Below are positions 50,066-56,362 of a stretch of DNA of 64,000 bases, piece by piece. A program made the position numbers and the translations under genes. Position 1 is the first letter of the stretch; each line of letters opens with the position of its first letter. The DNA lies in the sequence record LT960552.1; one strand, written 5' to 3'. The notes beneath the pieces are model-generated. The model was not told the DNA's origin, ran no database searches, and was given only the letters and a program-made list of their open reading frames with translations.

Positions 50066-50093
50066 AAAAAGGAGCCATTAGGCTCCTTTTTTT
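50066..50093. terminator. Bidirectional intrinsic terminator
   Basis: AAAAAGGAGCC-ATTA-GGCTCCTTTTT. Confidence 0.85.
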
Positions 50094-50572
50094 ATTTGTG
50101 TCATGTCTAAATCACCAGATTTGATCAGTTTTCTTGCTTGATTCGCTCTCTTGGCTGTGTTAGACTCTGGTACTACATTAAATGATTCTAAAATAGAACA
50201 TTGTTGAGCAGAGGGCAATGATTTGAACTTTCTAACATCAACAGTTAATGCAGTATGGTGTATAACTTGTTCATCTTCTGGTATATTATTATTTTTTTCT
50301 AAGTAATCAGCCAATTTTCTTAATACTTCATGAATAGGCTTGTCGGTTAAATGCCCCAAACAGCGTTTAAATGAGTTTACAACTCGACCTTCCCACCCGT
50401 TAACTTCATTTTGTAATACTTCACGGCAATGCTGATTGTCGGCATGAAGATGGTCTAAAACAGGTTTTGTTATAGGAATACCAATAATAGGATCTATACC
50501 TTTTTGTTTTTTTAACAATTCGTTGCGATATACTGCTGCTTCTTTTGAATTTTTTAATCTTTGTCGTTTCAT
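50078..50572 (-). CDS. Endonuclease VII-like Holliday junction resolvase (T4 gp49-like)
   Basis: Q.G.DPI...VLDHLH...CREVL...N..EG aligns by eye with T4 EndoVII (LDHDH...VRGLLC..CN..EG). RBS GAGG before ATG 50572. Confidence 0.75.
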   Translation of the reverse strand: MKRQRLKNSKEAAVYRNELLKKQKGIDPIIGIPITKPVLDHLHADNQHCREVLQNEVNGWEGRVVNSFKRCLGHLTDKPIHEVLRKLADYLEKNNNIPEDEQVIHHTALTVDVRKFKSLPSAQQCSILESFNVVPESNTAKRANQARKLIKSGDLDMTQIKKGA

Positions 50573-50614
50573 ATATACCTCTAAAGTCTTTATATAATTG
50601 TATTTAACGAAATA

Positions 50615-50643
50615 TGGAACAGATAAAAATAATTTGGTATAAT
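50615..50643 (+). promoter_or_regulatory. Early/middle-type promoter firing into a gene-free region
   Basis: TGGAAC 50615-50620; TGG-TATAAT 50638-50643. Confidence 0.75.
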
Positions 50644-50649
50644 AAGATA

Positions 50650-51149
50650 GTAAAACCCTGTTTGGCAATACATATATGTATTGACAGTTAATAATCCTGA
50701 TCTAGTCGAAAAGTAGACAGCAGATGAGAAGTTCAAACAGTTCGTTGTGCAAAAGAAACCCGTTAGAAGTACGTGCAGTCAATCAAATGAGACATAAGAC
50801 ACCGAGATCACGGCAATGCGGCACATTAAAGAAGTACACTAGGCAAATAGTACTTCCTCGATAGACATATAAGGATCGCACCTTACAAAGTAGCTAAGGG
50901 AGTTTTTCTGAATAAGAAAATTGCGATTGATTTATATACAATATAGATCCGTCAAAAATTCAGAAGAATAAGTATTAAGATTGATTGTATAGTCTTAATA
51001 TTAGTGTGGTAAGCCCACGACCGTTACTATATGAACAGTGATAGAGAGAAACAGAGTAACCCGCTTTCGTTCTAGTTATAGAAATTCACTATACAATTAA
51101 TCGATGACCATCATCGTCAGAAAATTAATACCTTAACTGGTATTTTTTT
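50650..51149 (+). ncRNA. Candidate ~500-nt structured non-coding RNA of unknown family
   Basis: Promoter upstream, terminator at 51127-51149, no ORF of 60 aa or more, and at least eight stems, several with G-U pairs on the + strand. Confidence 0.55.
51127..51149 (+). terminator. Intrinsic terminator-like hairpin
   Basis: AATACC-TTAACT-GGTATT followed by a T run. Confidence 0.6.
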
Positions 51150-51320
51150 ACGCATTCATTCCCCTGCGGGGGGATGGTATAATCTCAACAAATCTCGTCA
51201 GTATTATAGTATTGAACATAGAAAGAAATGAATTGAGTTGTTTCAGTACAAACGAAGTGAAGTACAGAACAACGAAAATTCTTTGACATTCGAAGAATGG
51301 CAAATTAAAACAATAGAAAC

Positions 51321-51356
51321 AAAAAAACCAGCAACATGTGCTGGTTATGATTTTTT
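51321..51356. terminator. Bidirectional terminator-like hairpin
   Basis: AACCAGCA-ACATG-TGCTGGTT with an A run on the left and a T run on the right. Confidence 0.7.
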
Positions 51357-51524
51357 GTTTTCACGTTTGATCTTTTTATTATATTGCTTCACCATCAAAT
51401 CTTTGTCATTGACTGGCATATTCAATAGCATTTCATATGAAGTATTAGGTATATGAACTGCTACTTCCATTAAAGAGTTTTTAATTTCTTCACAATTGAA
51501 CCGCAAATCAGATATTTCCTTCAT
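51345..51524 (-). CDS. Small gp51-like / tail-assembly-chaperone extension ORF (59 aa; absent from the ORF track)
   Basis: Translated by hand: MKEISDLRFNCEEIKNSLMEVAVHIPNTSYEMLLNMPVNDKDLMVKQYNKKIKRENKKS. ATG overlaps the upstream TAA (TAATG), and the frame is open back to the slippery site. Confidence 0.7.
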   Translation of the reverse strand: MKEISDLRFNCEEIKNSLMEVAVHIPNTSYEMLLNMPVNDKDLMVKQYNKKIKRENKKS

Positions 51525-52399
51525 TACTTCGTCTGGTTCTGAGATGAGAAGCTTGATACGAAAAAACTGCTTGGATCAAATTGAAGATTTTCTAATTTCC
51601 ATTCATGTCCACATTTAGAACATCCCACATCCATTTCATGAGTTACCCCAACATTATTAATATAATCAGATTTTTCACGAATTTGTTTTAAAATAAATGC
51701 TGGTTGTTTTCCTAACCAATCGTTAATAAATTCTCTTTCAGTAACTACAATTTGGTCTACAGTTTCAATAGATTCAATATTTGCAACTATCATATCAAAA
51801 CTTAATTGAGTCATACTTTCAAATACTGAAGTAAACTGTTTAATTTTATCATCATCAGATAAATCAGCTCCTTCCAATAATTGAGCTTTCTTTTGCTCTT
51901 GAAACATTTTAAGCCCAAACTCTGAATGTTCTTTCCATGTATGAGGCTTAAATTTCAACATTAATCCACCAACATCTTCAAGTACTAACGTAGGTTGTTC
52001 TTCTATAAGTTCAGCACTATCAATTAAGTACTGCAAATTCCTTTCAAATGCCCCATGATGATCACATTCTGGACAATTTACTTCTATTTGATATTCTGTT
52101 TCTTTTGTGGCTAGTTTAATTCCTATTAAAAGTAATTCAACATCAGGAACAAACAATTCACGAGCATTTGCTATATTTGGTACACAATTCTGAATAACAT
52201 TAACTACTGCTTCACCATTCATAAGTGCATCAGGATTGTTAAACATCAATTCATCTCGTGCCGACCGTGCACAAATACCACATTCTACTGTATTATTAAC
52301 TAACACACCAGCAGGGTATTTTATTACATCATTACTTACTAATTTTGTATATAAAGTTTCTACTTTAGTATACTTTGATAAAGGGTTCATTTGATTCAT
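51524..52399 (-). CDS. Baseplate hub assembly / tail assembly chaperone (T4 gp26-like)
   Basis: NPLSKY, ARDELMFNNPDALMNGEAV..VIQNC, DVELLLIGIKLAT, CPEC and CSKC zinc pairs, FDPSSFF near the end. Confidence 0.75.
   Translation of the reverse strand: MNQMNPLSKYTKVETLYTKLVSNDVIKYPAGVLVNNTVECGICARSARDELMFNNPDALMNGEAVVNVIQNCVPNIANARELFVPDVELLLIGIKLATKETEYQIEVNCPECDHHGAFERNLQYLIDSAELIEEQPTLVLEDVGGLMLKFKPHTWKEHSEFGLKMFQEQKKAQLLEGADLSDDDKIKQFTSVFESMTQLSFDMIVANIESIETVDQIVVTEREFINDWLGKQPAFILKQIREKSDYINNVGVTHEMDVGCSKCGHEWKLENLQFDPSSFFVSSFSSQNQTK
51560..51566 (-). other. Putative -1 ribosomal frameshift heptamer T TTT TTC
   Basis: In-frame AGT TTT TTC; the -1 frame (TTT TTT CGT ATC...) runs without a stop into ORF 51345-51524. 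Confidence 0.6.
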
Positions 52400-52418: not shown

Positions 52419-52463
52419 CGTCTATACTATATTTTGTATAGAGTTATTTATGAGGGAAAATAC

Positions 52464-54611
52464 ATGGCAGGACTTAGCTCAGATTACATCTTACAATCGA
52501 TTTTGGATCAAAATGTTACTGCAAATGATAATTTATCTGCAATGCGTGAACTTCTTTCAAGTATCAATAAAGGTGTAAAAAATGGTAGTGGTTCTGGTGA
52601 TTCATCAGGATCTGGTAGTGGAAATAATAATAGAAGACCACCACCAAAGAAAGATAGTAATGCATTTGGAAAAGCATTTAAAGATTTATTTGGAGAAGCT
52701 AAAAATATTGGTGGTACTGTTCTTGGTAATAATGGTTCTATTCAAAACACGGTAGGTGCAGTATCTACATCAGCAAAAACACTACAATCATCATTAGGAA
52801 AATTACCAGGTCCAATTGGATTAGCTGCTAATGCATTTTTATCAATAATTCAAGTTGGTGGAATGGTTTATGACTATTTGAATGACCAATTGAATATGTA
52901 CAATCAACTTAATAGTGCAGGACTATCATTAGCTGATGGTATGTTAACTGTACGTAAAGGTGCATCAGGTGCATTTTTAAGTATTAATGAATATTCAAAA
53001 GTATTAGAGAAAAACAGTGATGCTATTGCTGCAATGGATGGACAGTATGGCGATGGTGTTGAACACTTTGGTAAATTACTAAATACCGTCCAACTAACAC
53101 AAGAAAAAATTGGATTATATGGAGTATCCCAGCAACAATTAGCAGATATTGCTGCAAAGAATTTCAAATTTGAAAAAATGTATTCAGGTCAATCACAATT
53201 GCGTAGTATGACTGAATCTCAAAGTACTGAAAAATTTGTCGGTACTATGACATACTTAAGTAAGACTGTTGGTAAAAGTGTAGATGAATTAATCACTAAG
53301 TTTAGTGATATGAGTCAAAACCTTGATACTGGTTTATCACAAGATGCGTTGATGACTTATTATGGATTAACTGAAGATAAAGCATCACAAGTTACCAAAA
53401 GTATGAACTCAATATTTGCAAGTATGGGTGAAGCTGGTTCTCAATTACAAAAATTAAATGCTAGTAAATTACAAACTGGTGCATTACCAGAAGAATTCAA
53501 TAACCAATTTACTCAAATGTATACTGATAGGATAACACAGTTACAAGCTGCTGGAATAACTGATGAAAAACAACTTCGTCGTGCTATGTCGAAGTATGTT
53601 AAGGATCATAAAAAACAGTTAGATGATGAAATACGTTATCAGAATCTAGCAGGGAATACTACTGCATCAGCATGGTTAAACCAACTTAGAAATATTGAAA
53701 ACACATTGAATGATCCTAAAAATCAACCAAGTCCAATAATTGAAAATTTCACTAATAGATTTAACTTATGGATAGGAAAAACATTCACTGAACCATTCAA
53801 TGCATTTTATGCAAAAACTGCCGAAGGTGCAGTACAGTACTTGTCGGATTTAGCAGATAGAAGTACTGACTCATGGGATTTCATGGCTAATTTAGTTTCT
53901 GATGCATTTACTAAGTTTGATGCAGGTATGCTTGGGCCATTTGGTGCGTTAATAGAACTTCCAAAAAAATTAATGAATATAATTTTTGGAGATTCATGGA
54001 ATAAAGTCACTGATGCTTTTACTAATTTAGGTGGAGATCTTGTACAAATTCCAGTACGTATTGGTAAATTAATATGGGAAATGTTCACTGGTTCCAGTGA
54101 TGAAGTAGACCAAGCAGGGAAAGAATTAGCGGGGTCAATAAAAAGAGTATTTGCATCAGTAGGTAATGCTTTTGATAATATAACTAAGTTAGATATTAAT
54201 ATGGATGATGTTAAAAATAAATTTTTAGATGCATTTAATTCATTAAAAAGTAAATTATCATCAGTATGGAGCAAAATGAAATCTTGGTGGAGTGATGCAG
54301 ATGATTCACCATCTGATAAATCTAAACCTGAAACTAAAAAACCACCTACACCAATAGCAAATCAACCAAAAACATCAGGACAACAAAAAGTAACTTCTCC
54401 CGCAGAATATACTAAACCTGAACAGATAGAACAATCAGAACCACCTTCAATGACAGAGGTTCAAACAGCACAGAATAGTACTACAGATCCTACAAATAAG
54501 ATACTTTCTGCAATACTAAATAACTTAGAAAGTCAAGGACAGGCAAACAGTCAAGCCGCGATTATTTTAAGACAGATTGCTGATAATACAGAACCTGCTC
54601 GAAATGTATAA
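52464..54611 (+). CDS. Putative tape measure / baseplate hub protein (T4 gp29-like role)
   Basis: About 715 aa, predominantly helical-looking, with aromatic-spaced amphipathic C-terminal half; adjacent to the gp26/51-like genes. Inferred from composition and context only. Confidence 0.55.
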   Translation: MAGLSSDYILQSILDQNVTANDNLSAMRELLSSINKGVKNGSGSGDSSGSGSGNNNRRPPPKKDSNAFGKAFKDLFGEAKNIGGTVLGNNGSIQNTVGAVSTSAKTLQSSLGKLPGPIGLAANAFLSIIQVGGMVYDYLNDQLNMYNQLNSAGLSLADGMLTVRKGASGAFLSINEYSKVLEKNSDAIAAMDGQYGDGVEHFGKLLNTVQLTQEKIGLYGVSQQQLADIAAKNFKFEKMYSGQSQLRSMTESQSTEKFVGTMTYLSKTVGKSVDELITKFSDMSQNLDTGLSQDALMTYYGLTEDKASQVTKSMNSIFASMGEAGSQLQKLNASKLQTGALPEEFNNQFTQMYTDRITQLQAAGITDEKQLRRAMSKYVKDHKKQLDDEIRYQNLAGNTTASAWLNQLRNIENTLNDPKNQPSPIIENFTNRFNLWIGKTFTEPFNAFYAKTAEGAVQYLSDLADRSTDSWDFMANLVSDAFTKFDAGMLGPFGALIELPKKLMNIIFGDSWNKVTDAFTNLGGDLVQIPVRIGKLIWEMFTGSSDEVDQAGKELAGSIKRVFASVGNAFDNITKLDINMDDVKNKFLDAFNSLKSKLSSVWSKMKSWWSDADDSPSDKSKPETKKPPTPIANQPKTSGQQKVTSPAEYTKPEQIEQSEPPSMTEVQTAQNSTTDPTNKILSAILNNLESQGQANSQAAIILRQIADNTEPARNV

Positions 54612-54628: not shown

Positions 54629-56362
54629 ATGAGTTGGAAACGACATATGACAATGGGGCGTTCGAAAATTTCGAATTCCAATAGAAATAATTCAACACCA
54701 ATACAGTCTTCAGGGGCAAAAACTAATTTTTCCTCTTACTTACCTGCTGTATATACAGGATTGTCAAATCGTATTGATCGATATAGACAATACGACCAAA
54801 TGGATCAAGATCCAGAAATTAGAACTGCACTTAATATAATCGCAGATTTTTGTACCCAAAGTACACAAGATTATGGATTACCATTTAAGATTCAGTATAA
54901 AGATACAATGGGAGATACTGAAGTTACCACATTAGAAGATAGATTAGAATCATGGGCTGACCAAAATCAATTTAAAATACGAATTTACGATATTATTCGT
55001 GGTATTTTAAAATATGGGGATCAGTTCTTTATTCGTGATCCAGAAACATTTGAATGGTATTGGGTAAATCCAATGAATGTAGATAAAGTGGTAGTTAATG
55101 AAAGTACTGGTAAAAATCCAATCATTTATTATATTCGAGATGTTTCATTGAATATGCGTGATAAAGTAATGAGTAATTTACAATTAGGATTTGATAAAAT
55201 GGCTTATCCAGGATCATTACCTAATTCGTTAGCTGGATCTGGACAACAATATGGTTCTGGTGGTGGAGCAGGAGCAGATAGTTCTAATCCATTCGGTACT
55301 AATGGACAATTAGATGTATTACCAGTTGCCGCTGAGCATGTTATTCACTTATCACTAAACTCTGGACAAGATCCATTTTGGCCTTTTGGTACTAGTATTC
55401 TTGAAAATATTTTTAAAGTATATAAACAAAAAGAGTTATTAGAAGATAGTATAATAATTTATCGTGTACAACGTGCACCAGAACGTCGTGTTTTTAAAAT
55501 AGACGTAGGTGATATGCAACCACACCAAGCTATGGCATTTGTTGAAAGAGTTAAAAATGATATACATCAACGTAGAATACCTTCTAATAAAGGTGGAAGT
55601 ACTTCATTAATGGATGCAGCATATAACCCATTAAGTATATTAGAAGATTACTTTTTCCCACAAACTGCTGATGGTCGAGGATCATCGGTTGAAACACTAC
55701 CAGGTGGTGATAATTTAGGGCAAATTGATGATTTACGTTATTTTAATAATAAATTGATACGTGGATTACAAATTCCAGCATCATATCTACCAATGGGGCC
55801 AGATGATGGTGGCGTTGCGTTATTCGGTGATGGTGCAACACAAGCTATGGCAAGTGAATTACGTTTTAATAATGAATGTATGCGTTATCAGAGAATTATT
55901 TCTCGTATTTTTGATGATGAATTTAAACGTTATATGCTTAAAAATGGATATAACATAAGTGCTTCATCATTTGAAGTGACATTTAATCCACCAATGAACT
56001 TTGCAGCGAATCGTAAAGCAGAAATGGATGCTAAATTAATACAAACTTATATGCCATTAAATGATCTAAAATACTTCTCTAAACAGTTCATTATGAAGCA
56101 AATGGGCTTCGAACAAGATGATATTGTTGAGAATGAACGTTTATGGATGCAAGAAAATCCAGAAGCAATTAAAAATAGTAATACTAATGAAACTGGTGCA
56201 ACTGCTGGATTACAATCAGTTGGACTAGAAGCACCTAATAATCCAGAAACGGATTTAGGAATGGATGAAGATGGAAACTTAGAAAGTGCTGATGCAGAAT
56301 ATGAAAACCAAAATGGTGGAAATTCTGGATTTGATCCTAATAGTTTAGGTAATTCATTTTAA
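54629..56362 (+). CDS. Portal protein (T4 gp20-like)
   Basis: YDQMDQDPEI, LEDSIIIYRVQRAPERRVFKIDVG, EDYFFPQTADGRGSSVETLPGG, DDLRYFNNKLIRGLQIP. Confidence 0.95.
   Translation: MSWKRHMTMGRSKISNSNRNNSTPIQSSGAKTNFSSYLPAVYTGLSNRIDRYRQYDQMDQDPEIRTALNIIADFCTQSTQDYGLPFKIQYKDTMGDTEVTTLEDRLESWADQNQFKIRIYDIIRGILKYGDQFFIRDPETFEWYWVNPMNVDKVVVNESTGKNPIIYYIRDVSLNMRDKVMSNLQLGFDKMAYPGSLPNSLAGSGQQYGSGGGAGADSSNPFGTNGQLDVLPVAAEHVIHLSLNSGQDPFWPFGTSILENIFKVYKQKELLEDSIIIYRVQRAPERRVFKIDVGDMQPHQAMAFVERVKNDIHQRRIPSNKGGSTSLMDAAYNPLSILEDYFFPQTADGRGSSVETLPGGDNLGQIDDLRYFNNKLIRGLQIPASYLPMGPDDGGVALFGDGATQAMASELRFNNECMRYQRIISRIFDDEFKRYMLKNGYNISASSFEVTFNPPMNFAANRKAEMDAKLIQTYMPLNDLKYFSKQFIMKQMGFEQDDIVENERLWMQENPEAIKNSNTNETGATAGLQSVGLEAPNNPETDLGMDEDGNLESADAEYENQNGGNSGFDPNSLGNSF

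Follow-up and report, generated by a model that had tools for sequence, protein, structure and literature searches.

Where does the coding information for a gp26-like phage protein end: at the stop codon of its own reading frame, or in an overlapping frame that ribosomes would enter by slipping back one base? The question is raised by a gene, here called the hub gene, on the minus strand of a 64,000-nucleotide stretch of sequence record LT960552.1. This stretch (the window; its coordinates equal those of LT960552.1 minus 124,000) belongs to Yersinia phage fHe-Yen9-03, a 352.6-kb jumbo myovirus of the genus Eneladusvirus, to which the 2 kb surrounding the site are identical. A first-pass annotation, made from the letters of the window, had proposed a hidden -1 frameshift that extends the gp26-like protein, and comparison with relatives lends this proposal strong support. 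We regard a programmed -1 ribosomal frameshift at a slippery heptamer in the hub gene, through which one gene would yield a gp26-like short and a gp51-like long form, as the probable explanation (roughly 85%).

A slippery heptamer on a conserved Phe-Phe pair

Read in its own (0) frame, the hub gene (51524..52399, minus strand) comprises 291 codons and a stop, from an ATG at 52399 to a TAA at 51526-51524. Its product matches the Pfam family PF12322, 'T4 bacteriophage base plate protein' (T4_baseplate), over residues 54-280 with E = 6e-23; the score of 82.1 bits against a curated cut-off of 24.5 places it in the family. It also matches phrog_150 (baseplate hub) at 8.9e-30, and its gp26/gp51-family domain carries two Cys-x2-Cys pairs. 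Codons 279-280 specify Phe-Phe, both residues of which (F279 and F280) are invariant across 21 diverse homologues, and are followed by an unconserved 11-residue 0-frame tail. The AlphaFold model of the domain has a predicted local distance difference test score (pLDDT) of 87.5, with the 0-frame tail disordered (residues 282-291 below 50). Searched against BFVD, this model retrieves many predicted phage baseplate hub/assembly proteins (best 2.5e-24); a Foldseek search of the PDB returned nothing significant (best E = 0.33).

Near its end the hub gene reads AGT TTT TTC GTA, and the minus strand bears out the canonical X XXY YYZ register that had been assigned to the heptamer T TTT TTC at 51566-51560. 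The 0 frame does close soon after this site, with 11 sense codons before the TAA. The -1 frame, open from 51575, continues without a stop: counted from the last heptamer base (51560), the extension runs for 71 codons (51345..51560, minus strand) to a TAA at 51347-51345. The peptide quoted for this frame by the first-pass annotation, YEMLLNMPVNDKD, is present. Both frames are open in an overlap zone (51524..51560, minus strand). There the -1 peptide is conserved across the family, but neither the sequence nor the length (1-12 codons) of the 0-frame tail is. At the end of this zone lies an ATG at 51524; it forms a TAATG with the 0-frame stop and is read through by the -1 frame. The 59-residue open reading frame (ORF) that begins at this ATG (51345..51524, minus strand) is the part of the extension visible to gene callers. 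It had been described as unannotated; GenBank does list it, as g245c, 'hypothetical protein' (phrog_18291, unknown function), but the link between the two ORFs is indeed missing, hub and extension ORFs being joined in 0/18 annotated records fetched. The predicted model of the extension (pLDDT 78.7) has three helices, at residues 9-34, 42-46 and 52-70. Its sole BFVD match was a close homologue, and a Pfam scan of 31 extensions gave scattered chance matches only.

For comparison we assembled 98 loci, consisting of 18 named phages and 80 IMG/VR viral contigs retrieved by hub-protein alignment. They collapse to 79 distinct sequences, with protein identities to the window's protein as low as ~25%. 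The named phages span at least eight lineages (Eneladusvirus, Mimasvirus, Asteriusvirus, Alcyoneusvirus, 7t3, Vibrio 2.275.O, Atu_ph07/Phosso, PA5oct, the XacN1 group and RsoM2USA), so that jumbo myoviruses of Yersinia, Escherichia, Klebsiella, Salmonella, Erwinia, Pseudomonas, Agrobacterium, Xanthomonas and Vibrio are covered together with many uncultured ones. An in-frame X XXY YYZ heptamer lies on the invariant Phe-Phe in 98/98 loci (79/79 distinct sequences), as T TTT TTC in 63 distinct sequences, T TTT TTT in 8 and A AAT TTT in 8. Past the site, 69-93 codons (median 76) can be read in the -1 frame before a stop, compared with 1-12 (median 3) in the 0 frame and a median of 8 in the +1 frame. 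The conservation of site and open -1 frame among homologues, named at the outset as one of the checks to make, thus holds at all 98 loci, though T4 lacks the site. All of them repeat the register, the relation between the frames and the long ORF in the -1 frame, so that heptamer and open frame are not a matter of chance.

The bases of the heptamer also resist codon preference. The codon that supplies its first base encodes ten different amino acids, yet its third base never departs from what the heptamer requires. NNT TTT occurs in all 17 deep clusters, for which a joint probability of ~1e-9 is obtained from each gene's own codon usage alone. At locus L092, where GC content at third codon positions is 0.86 and the rest of the gene uses TTT 0 times and TTC 9 times, the site still reads AGT TTT TTC. 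By this measure the slippery bases are preserved against codon bias.

Could the arrangement nevertheless involve no recoding and no function, as a chance overlap in one genome or as a single gene broken in two by a sequencing error in a homopolymer? The prior for any single heptamer is low, and homopolymer runs are error-prone in some sequencing chemistries. The arrangement is, however, common to 79 distinct sequences from isolates and metagenomes, including some with a non-homopolymer heptamer, and the two parts share a frame in no relative. Hub homologues (n = 97) measure 276-313 residues, and neither an in-frame fusion nor a long homologue was found among them; since none exceeds 313 residues, no relative carries both parts in one frame. 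A profile of the small ORF, narrow because built from close relatives only, gave 14 matches in 1.84 billion representatives, all short and stand-alone but one, a 391-residue match (E = 2e-4) that we took as spurious. A natural in-frame form of domain plus tail was found as T4 gp51. The sequence comparison effectively refutes the reading without recoding.

The heptamer variants bear on a second alternative, transcriptional slippage, in which RNA polymerase would insert an additional U at the T run and normal reading of the changed mRNA would give the long protein. The site does contain a six-T run, lengthened to at least seven in the XacN1 group and to nine in RsoM2USA, and a one-base insertion would yield a product identical to that of a -1 ribosomal shift. 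Bacterial polymerases are known to slip appreciably on longer runs only, however, and the run is fixed at exactly six T followed by C in 63/79 sequences rather than being longer. The A AAT TTT variant (loci L027, L028, L036, L037, L066, L068, L076, L083 and L090; 8 distinct sequences) is a different canonical heptamer at the identical position and has only five T. Not being a long homopolymer, it favours tRNA re-pairing over polymerase slippage; the conserved A that precedes AAT (GTA or ACA) likewise matters for tandem tRNA re-pairing and not for a polymerase. We consider transcriptional slippage very improbable as the route to the long protein. In the Ralstonia phage RsoM2USA (L017, ~1965-1975), the nine-T slip site is followed by a -1 frame open for 82 codons with no annotated gene downstream; a run of this length could let polymerase slippage contribute there alongside the ribosomal kind. 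The 0-frame protein of the A AAT TTT clade is without the second Phe, a residue that the -1 frame alone provides, which is a hint that constraint acts on the long form.

Coding of the extension from the slip point

If ribosomes enter the extension by a -1 shift, its sequence should be coding from the slip point onward. Each of the 31 extensions was translated in one -1 frame only, and the alignment of these peptides keeps register from the first post-slip codon onward. Over the first 12 post-slip codons, the -1 frame's third positions show the highest entropy (1.72 bits vs 1.36 and 1.21). In the window, conservation in the -1 frame includes the 12 residues on the 5' side of the ATG, and the conserved post-slip motif, which lies upstream of the ATG here, falls within the called ORF in 121Q.

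A third alternative holds that two separate proteins are made: the 59-residue ORF would be translated only from the ATG at 51524, by coupling through the TAATG, and the heptamer would be a by-product of the conserved Phe-Phe, given the AT-richness of the genome. In the window, BF, GAP32 and CBB, the hub gene has an ATG at its end or close to it, GenBank marks a 3-nucleotide ribosome-binding site at ATG 51524, gene callers give stand-alone ORFs of 41-67 residues, and Phe-Phe is conserved in T4 too, without a frameshift. A survey of start codons in the 78 complete extensions speaks against this explanation. An ATG stands neither within the first 20 post-slip codons nor upstream of them in 48/78, which thus have none early enough; the first ATG lies beyond codon 25 in 47/78, and one of the 78 has no ATG at all. 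RaK2 offers no ATG, GTG or TTG ahead of the homology region and the PA5oct extension contains no Met; no gene is annotated at the extension in the records of RaK2, PA5oct and RsoM2USA. Nor would separate translation account for the conserved residues ahead of the window's ATG and their inclusion in the called ORF of 121Q, or for an extension that occupies the -1 frame at 98/98 loci whatever the spacing. The NNT TTT retained in a GC-rich genome counts against a by-product of base composition, and T4, which has no recoding, spells Phe-Phe as TTC TTT. We judge an origin of the extension from the ATG alone to be very improbable, marginally more so than transcriptional slippage; translation from this start would contribute at most a minor added product in the window's lineage.

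The T4 paralogues, the virion and the proposed mechanism

What would a long form be for? In T4 (NC_000866.4, the accession given in PMC6070864), gp26 (208 residues) and gp51 (249 residues) match PF12322 over their full length (8.8e-64 and 3.9e-52) and each other by BLASTP (1.7e-6). Being both members of PF12322 and mutually similar, they are paralogues; no statement to this effect was found in the literature searched. Their genes stand back to back (L099, 7803-9229). Compared with gp26, gp51 has ~49 extra C-terminal residues, assigned by precomputed annotation to a second Pfam family, PF28602, which gp51 homologues also bear on their tails. A profile of the extensions matches the gp51 family (hhalign E = 1.2e-3) and the gp51 tail alone (P = 1.4e-4, score 24.7), and none of 100 column permutations reaches this score (0/100; mean 9.5, standard deviation 2.0, maximum 16.7). 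In a global alignment of the extension with the gp51 tail, the motif right after Phe is paired in both. The same profile found nothing in T4 gp25 and gp28, and tblastn with two hub proteins never reached T4-type phages. These profile matches support homology between the C-terminal tail of gp51 and the -1 extension. The small ORF had been called gp51-like; the resemblance holds for the ~49-residue C-terminal tail, not for the whole 249-residue gp51.

T4 itself does not frameshift. The T4 gp26 sequence closes with Phe-Phe and three further residues; the pair is written TTC TTT, the -1 frame meets a stop immediately, and gene 25 comes next. T4 therefore has the conserved residues without slippery bases or extension. 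It shares with the jumbo phages the PF12322 family, the invariant C-terminal Phe-Phe and a gp51 tail that resembles the -1 extension, and its gene 26 is divergent from an operon, 51-27-28-29-48-54, that holds the tape-measure gene 29, a layout like that of the window. It differs in having two paralogous genes and no slippery site, whereas the jumbo phages have one gene: a profile search found one family member in a complete 352-kb 121Q-like genome and two in T4. The jumbo-phage domain is also larger (~280 vs ~205 residues) and the tail ~20 residues longer than that of gp51.

Taken together, these comparisons suggest the following mechanism. Most ribosomes would stay in the 0 frame and make the 291-residue protein, which holds the gp26/gp51-family domain only. 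A fraction, with two Phe tRNAs on TTT TTC, would slip one base back on T TTT TTC, read the 71 codons of the -1 frame and make a protein of ~351 residues, in which the shared domain would be joined to a three-helix C-terminal tail of the type that T4 gp51 holds in frame. The 0-frame product would thus correspond to T4 gp26 and the shifted product to gp51, for which T4 uses two paralogous genes, and slippage would set the ratio of the short to the long hub assembly factor from a single gene. That slippage occurs, and at what rate, and that it is ribosomal is what we infer from the comparisons. By analogy with what is held for T4 gp26/gp51, both forms would be non-virion chaperones of hub and tape-measure assembly.

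Published virion data fit such a role. The mass-spectrometry table of CBB virions goes from CBB_247 straight to CBB_251, the homologue of the hub gene's divergent neighbour, which is listed with 29 peptides; the hub product CBB_250 is not listed. For PA5oct, a mass-spectrometry note is attached to the neighbour only and not to the hub gene product. Absence from both virion lists fits a non-virion assembly factor. The text of the CBB paper uses 'CBB_250' where CBB_240 (gp5-like) seems intended. In T4, gp26 and gp51 are counted among the chaperones of hub assembly, gp51 is absent from virions, and it is described as a protein that is essential but whose function is not known (Leiman et al. 2010).

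Several observations weigh against a programmed frameshift of this kind or reduce its force. Stimulatory elements, whether a downstream hairpin or pseudoknot or an upstream Shine-Dalgarno-like site, are common, though not obligatory, in phage -1 frameshifts. In the window, the 87 nucleotides from the heptamer fold no better than shuffled sequences (z = +1.2), RNAalifold found 0 shared pairs downstream of the heptamer in 28 sequences, and no Rfam element matched at the site. Without a shared stimulator, efficiency may be low and the rate is not predictable. The match to the gp51 tail, while significant, is short (34 columns locally, ~15% identity), and the ATG within the TAATG means that a free 59-residue protein could also arise in the window's lineage. 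GenBank names CBB_250 (L004, 1678-2535) a 'structural protein', an ill fit to a non-virion chaperone, although the paper's mass-spectrometry table omits it. The support for the frameshift is, moreover, wholly comparative.

As single-sequence folds, RNAalifold and Rfam show nothing shared, we dropped a downstream RNA stimulator from the mechanism; the heptamer may act alone, as in lambda G-T. Hairpins on the 3' side of the heptamer do occur in particular lineages, namely in Atu_ph07 (L012), PA5oct (L013) and 121Q (L008), and are absent in the window. That of Atu_ph07 (~2050-2075) has 11 GC-rich pairs and begins ~19 nucleotides past the heptamer (z = -2.7). These lineage-specific hairpins may tune the slip rate in their phages.

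Genomic surroundings and known frameshift systems

The surroundings of the hub gene bear on the claim that an adjacent, divergent putative tape-measure gene accompanies the frameshift. Adjacency and divergence stand: the neighbour g247 (52464..54611, plus strand; longest ORF from a TTG at 52434) encodes a 715-residue virion structural protein, possibly the tape measure. The label itself is weak. The protein matches phrog_14121 (virion structural protein) with E = 0 and the tape-measure family phrog_167 at only 1.5e-5, and its RaK2 homologue carries an annotation in the sense of similarity to a tape-measure protein. BLASTP found no similarity to T4 gp29, and there was none to PDB entries, so we do not apply the tape-measure name with confidence; on these matches its support is weak. 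Directly after this gene comes a T4-type portal gene (54629-56362, plus strand; Pfam Portal_T4, 3e-118), an order unlike that of T4, where head and tail-hub genes lie far apart.

On the other side, a terminator-like hairpin of 8 pairs with a T run (51316..51346, minus strand) overlaps the stop codon of the extension and closes the transcription unit. Two terminator-like sites were found vs 0.4 expected in shuffles, and both are opposite strands of this one hairpin. Between the extension ORF and an EndoVII gene (50078-50668, minus strand), the ~670 nucleotides at 50669-51344 hold no ORF of at least 60 residues. Several tiny ORFs are annotated in the equivalent region of Kaldavass and 7t3, and fHe-Yen9-04 differs from fHe-Yen9-03 near it by an insertion that adjoins a methyltransferase gene.

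Annotation of the hub gene itself is also affected. In LT960552.1 and LT960551.1, GenBank names it 'Lead, cadmium, zinc and mercury transporting ATPase; Copper-translocating P-type ATPase'. Judged by the profile match, this name is a mis-annotation of a PF12322 protein, and it probably derives from the Cys-x2-Cys pairs. The label 'baseplate hub subunit' may likewise mislead for a non-virion chaperone. The long product is missing from the records fetched and the extension is unannotated in several, and other related phage genomes are likely to be alike.

Our analysis thus shows that hub chaperones of the T4-type family in jumbo myoviruses bear a deeply conserved signal for frameshifting, and it ties the two predicted products to the T4 paralogues gp26 and gp51, making the unexplained role of gp51 approachable through its tail. 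Frameshift and gene duplication would form a natural example of alternative answers to one need. Searchable literature, which does not cover subscription journals, contained no report of frameshifting in the hub gene; this is not proof that none exists.

How does the locus compare with established frameshift systems? It resembles lambda G/G-T, with its counterparts in HK97, SPP1 and mycobacteriophages: a -1 shift near the 3' end of a tail-assembly gene gives a short and a long product that share their N-terminal part, strong RNA stimulators are absent, and the gene adjoins a tape-measure-type gene. In the lambda type, both forms bind the tape measure and the long one recruits tube protein. The lambda products serve in assembly and do not form part of the virion (Atkins et al.). 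Unlike lambda G, the hub gene has a different heptamer and is divergent from the tape-measure-like gene rather than upstream of and co-oriented with it. The hub protein has no sequence match to gpG-type chaperones in Pfam, NCBIfam or the PDB, and its model compares with the HK97 chaperone 2ob9 only at a Foldseek E of 2 (probability 0.13). Of the equivalence to G/G-T drawn by the first-pass annotation, the short/long logic and the position beside a tape-measure-like gene remain, but similarity to gpG in sequence or fold and an upstream position do not. The parallel is one of logic and not of ancestry, and the hub gene is no member of the lambda family.

Phage P2, with its E/E+E' pair, has a contractile tail, and upstream of its tape-measure gene a -1 shift occurs on a T-rich heptamer (T TTT TTN type). 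Its protein family is unrelated, and the P2 gene is co-oriented with, and directly upstream of, the tape-measure gene, unlike the hub gene. Frameshift efficiency in P2 is 2- to 3-fold above that of lambda (Atkins et al.). Escherichia coli dnaX (tau/gamma) resembles the hub gene in using an X XXY YYZ -1 shift to obtain two products in a fixed ratio. It differs in having strong upstream and downstream stimulators and in that its shifted product is the shorter one, whereas that of the hub gene would be longer.

T4 is the named exception to near-universal tail-gene frameshifting in long-tailed phages (Atkins et al.), and the jumbo-phage result suggests a reason for this exception. Tentatively, and at somewhat less than even odds, we propose that lambda G/G-T has its counterpart within the T4 superfamily in the gp26/gp51 family, where short and long forms that share a domain would guide hub and tape-measure assembly at a fixed ratio, obtained by frameshifting in jumbo phages and by duplicated genes in T4. 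If true, this would explain T4's status among tail-gene frameshifts, give gp51 a defined role and represent an independent, non-homologous re-invention of the short/long logic known from lambda.

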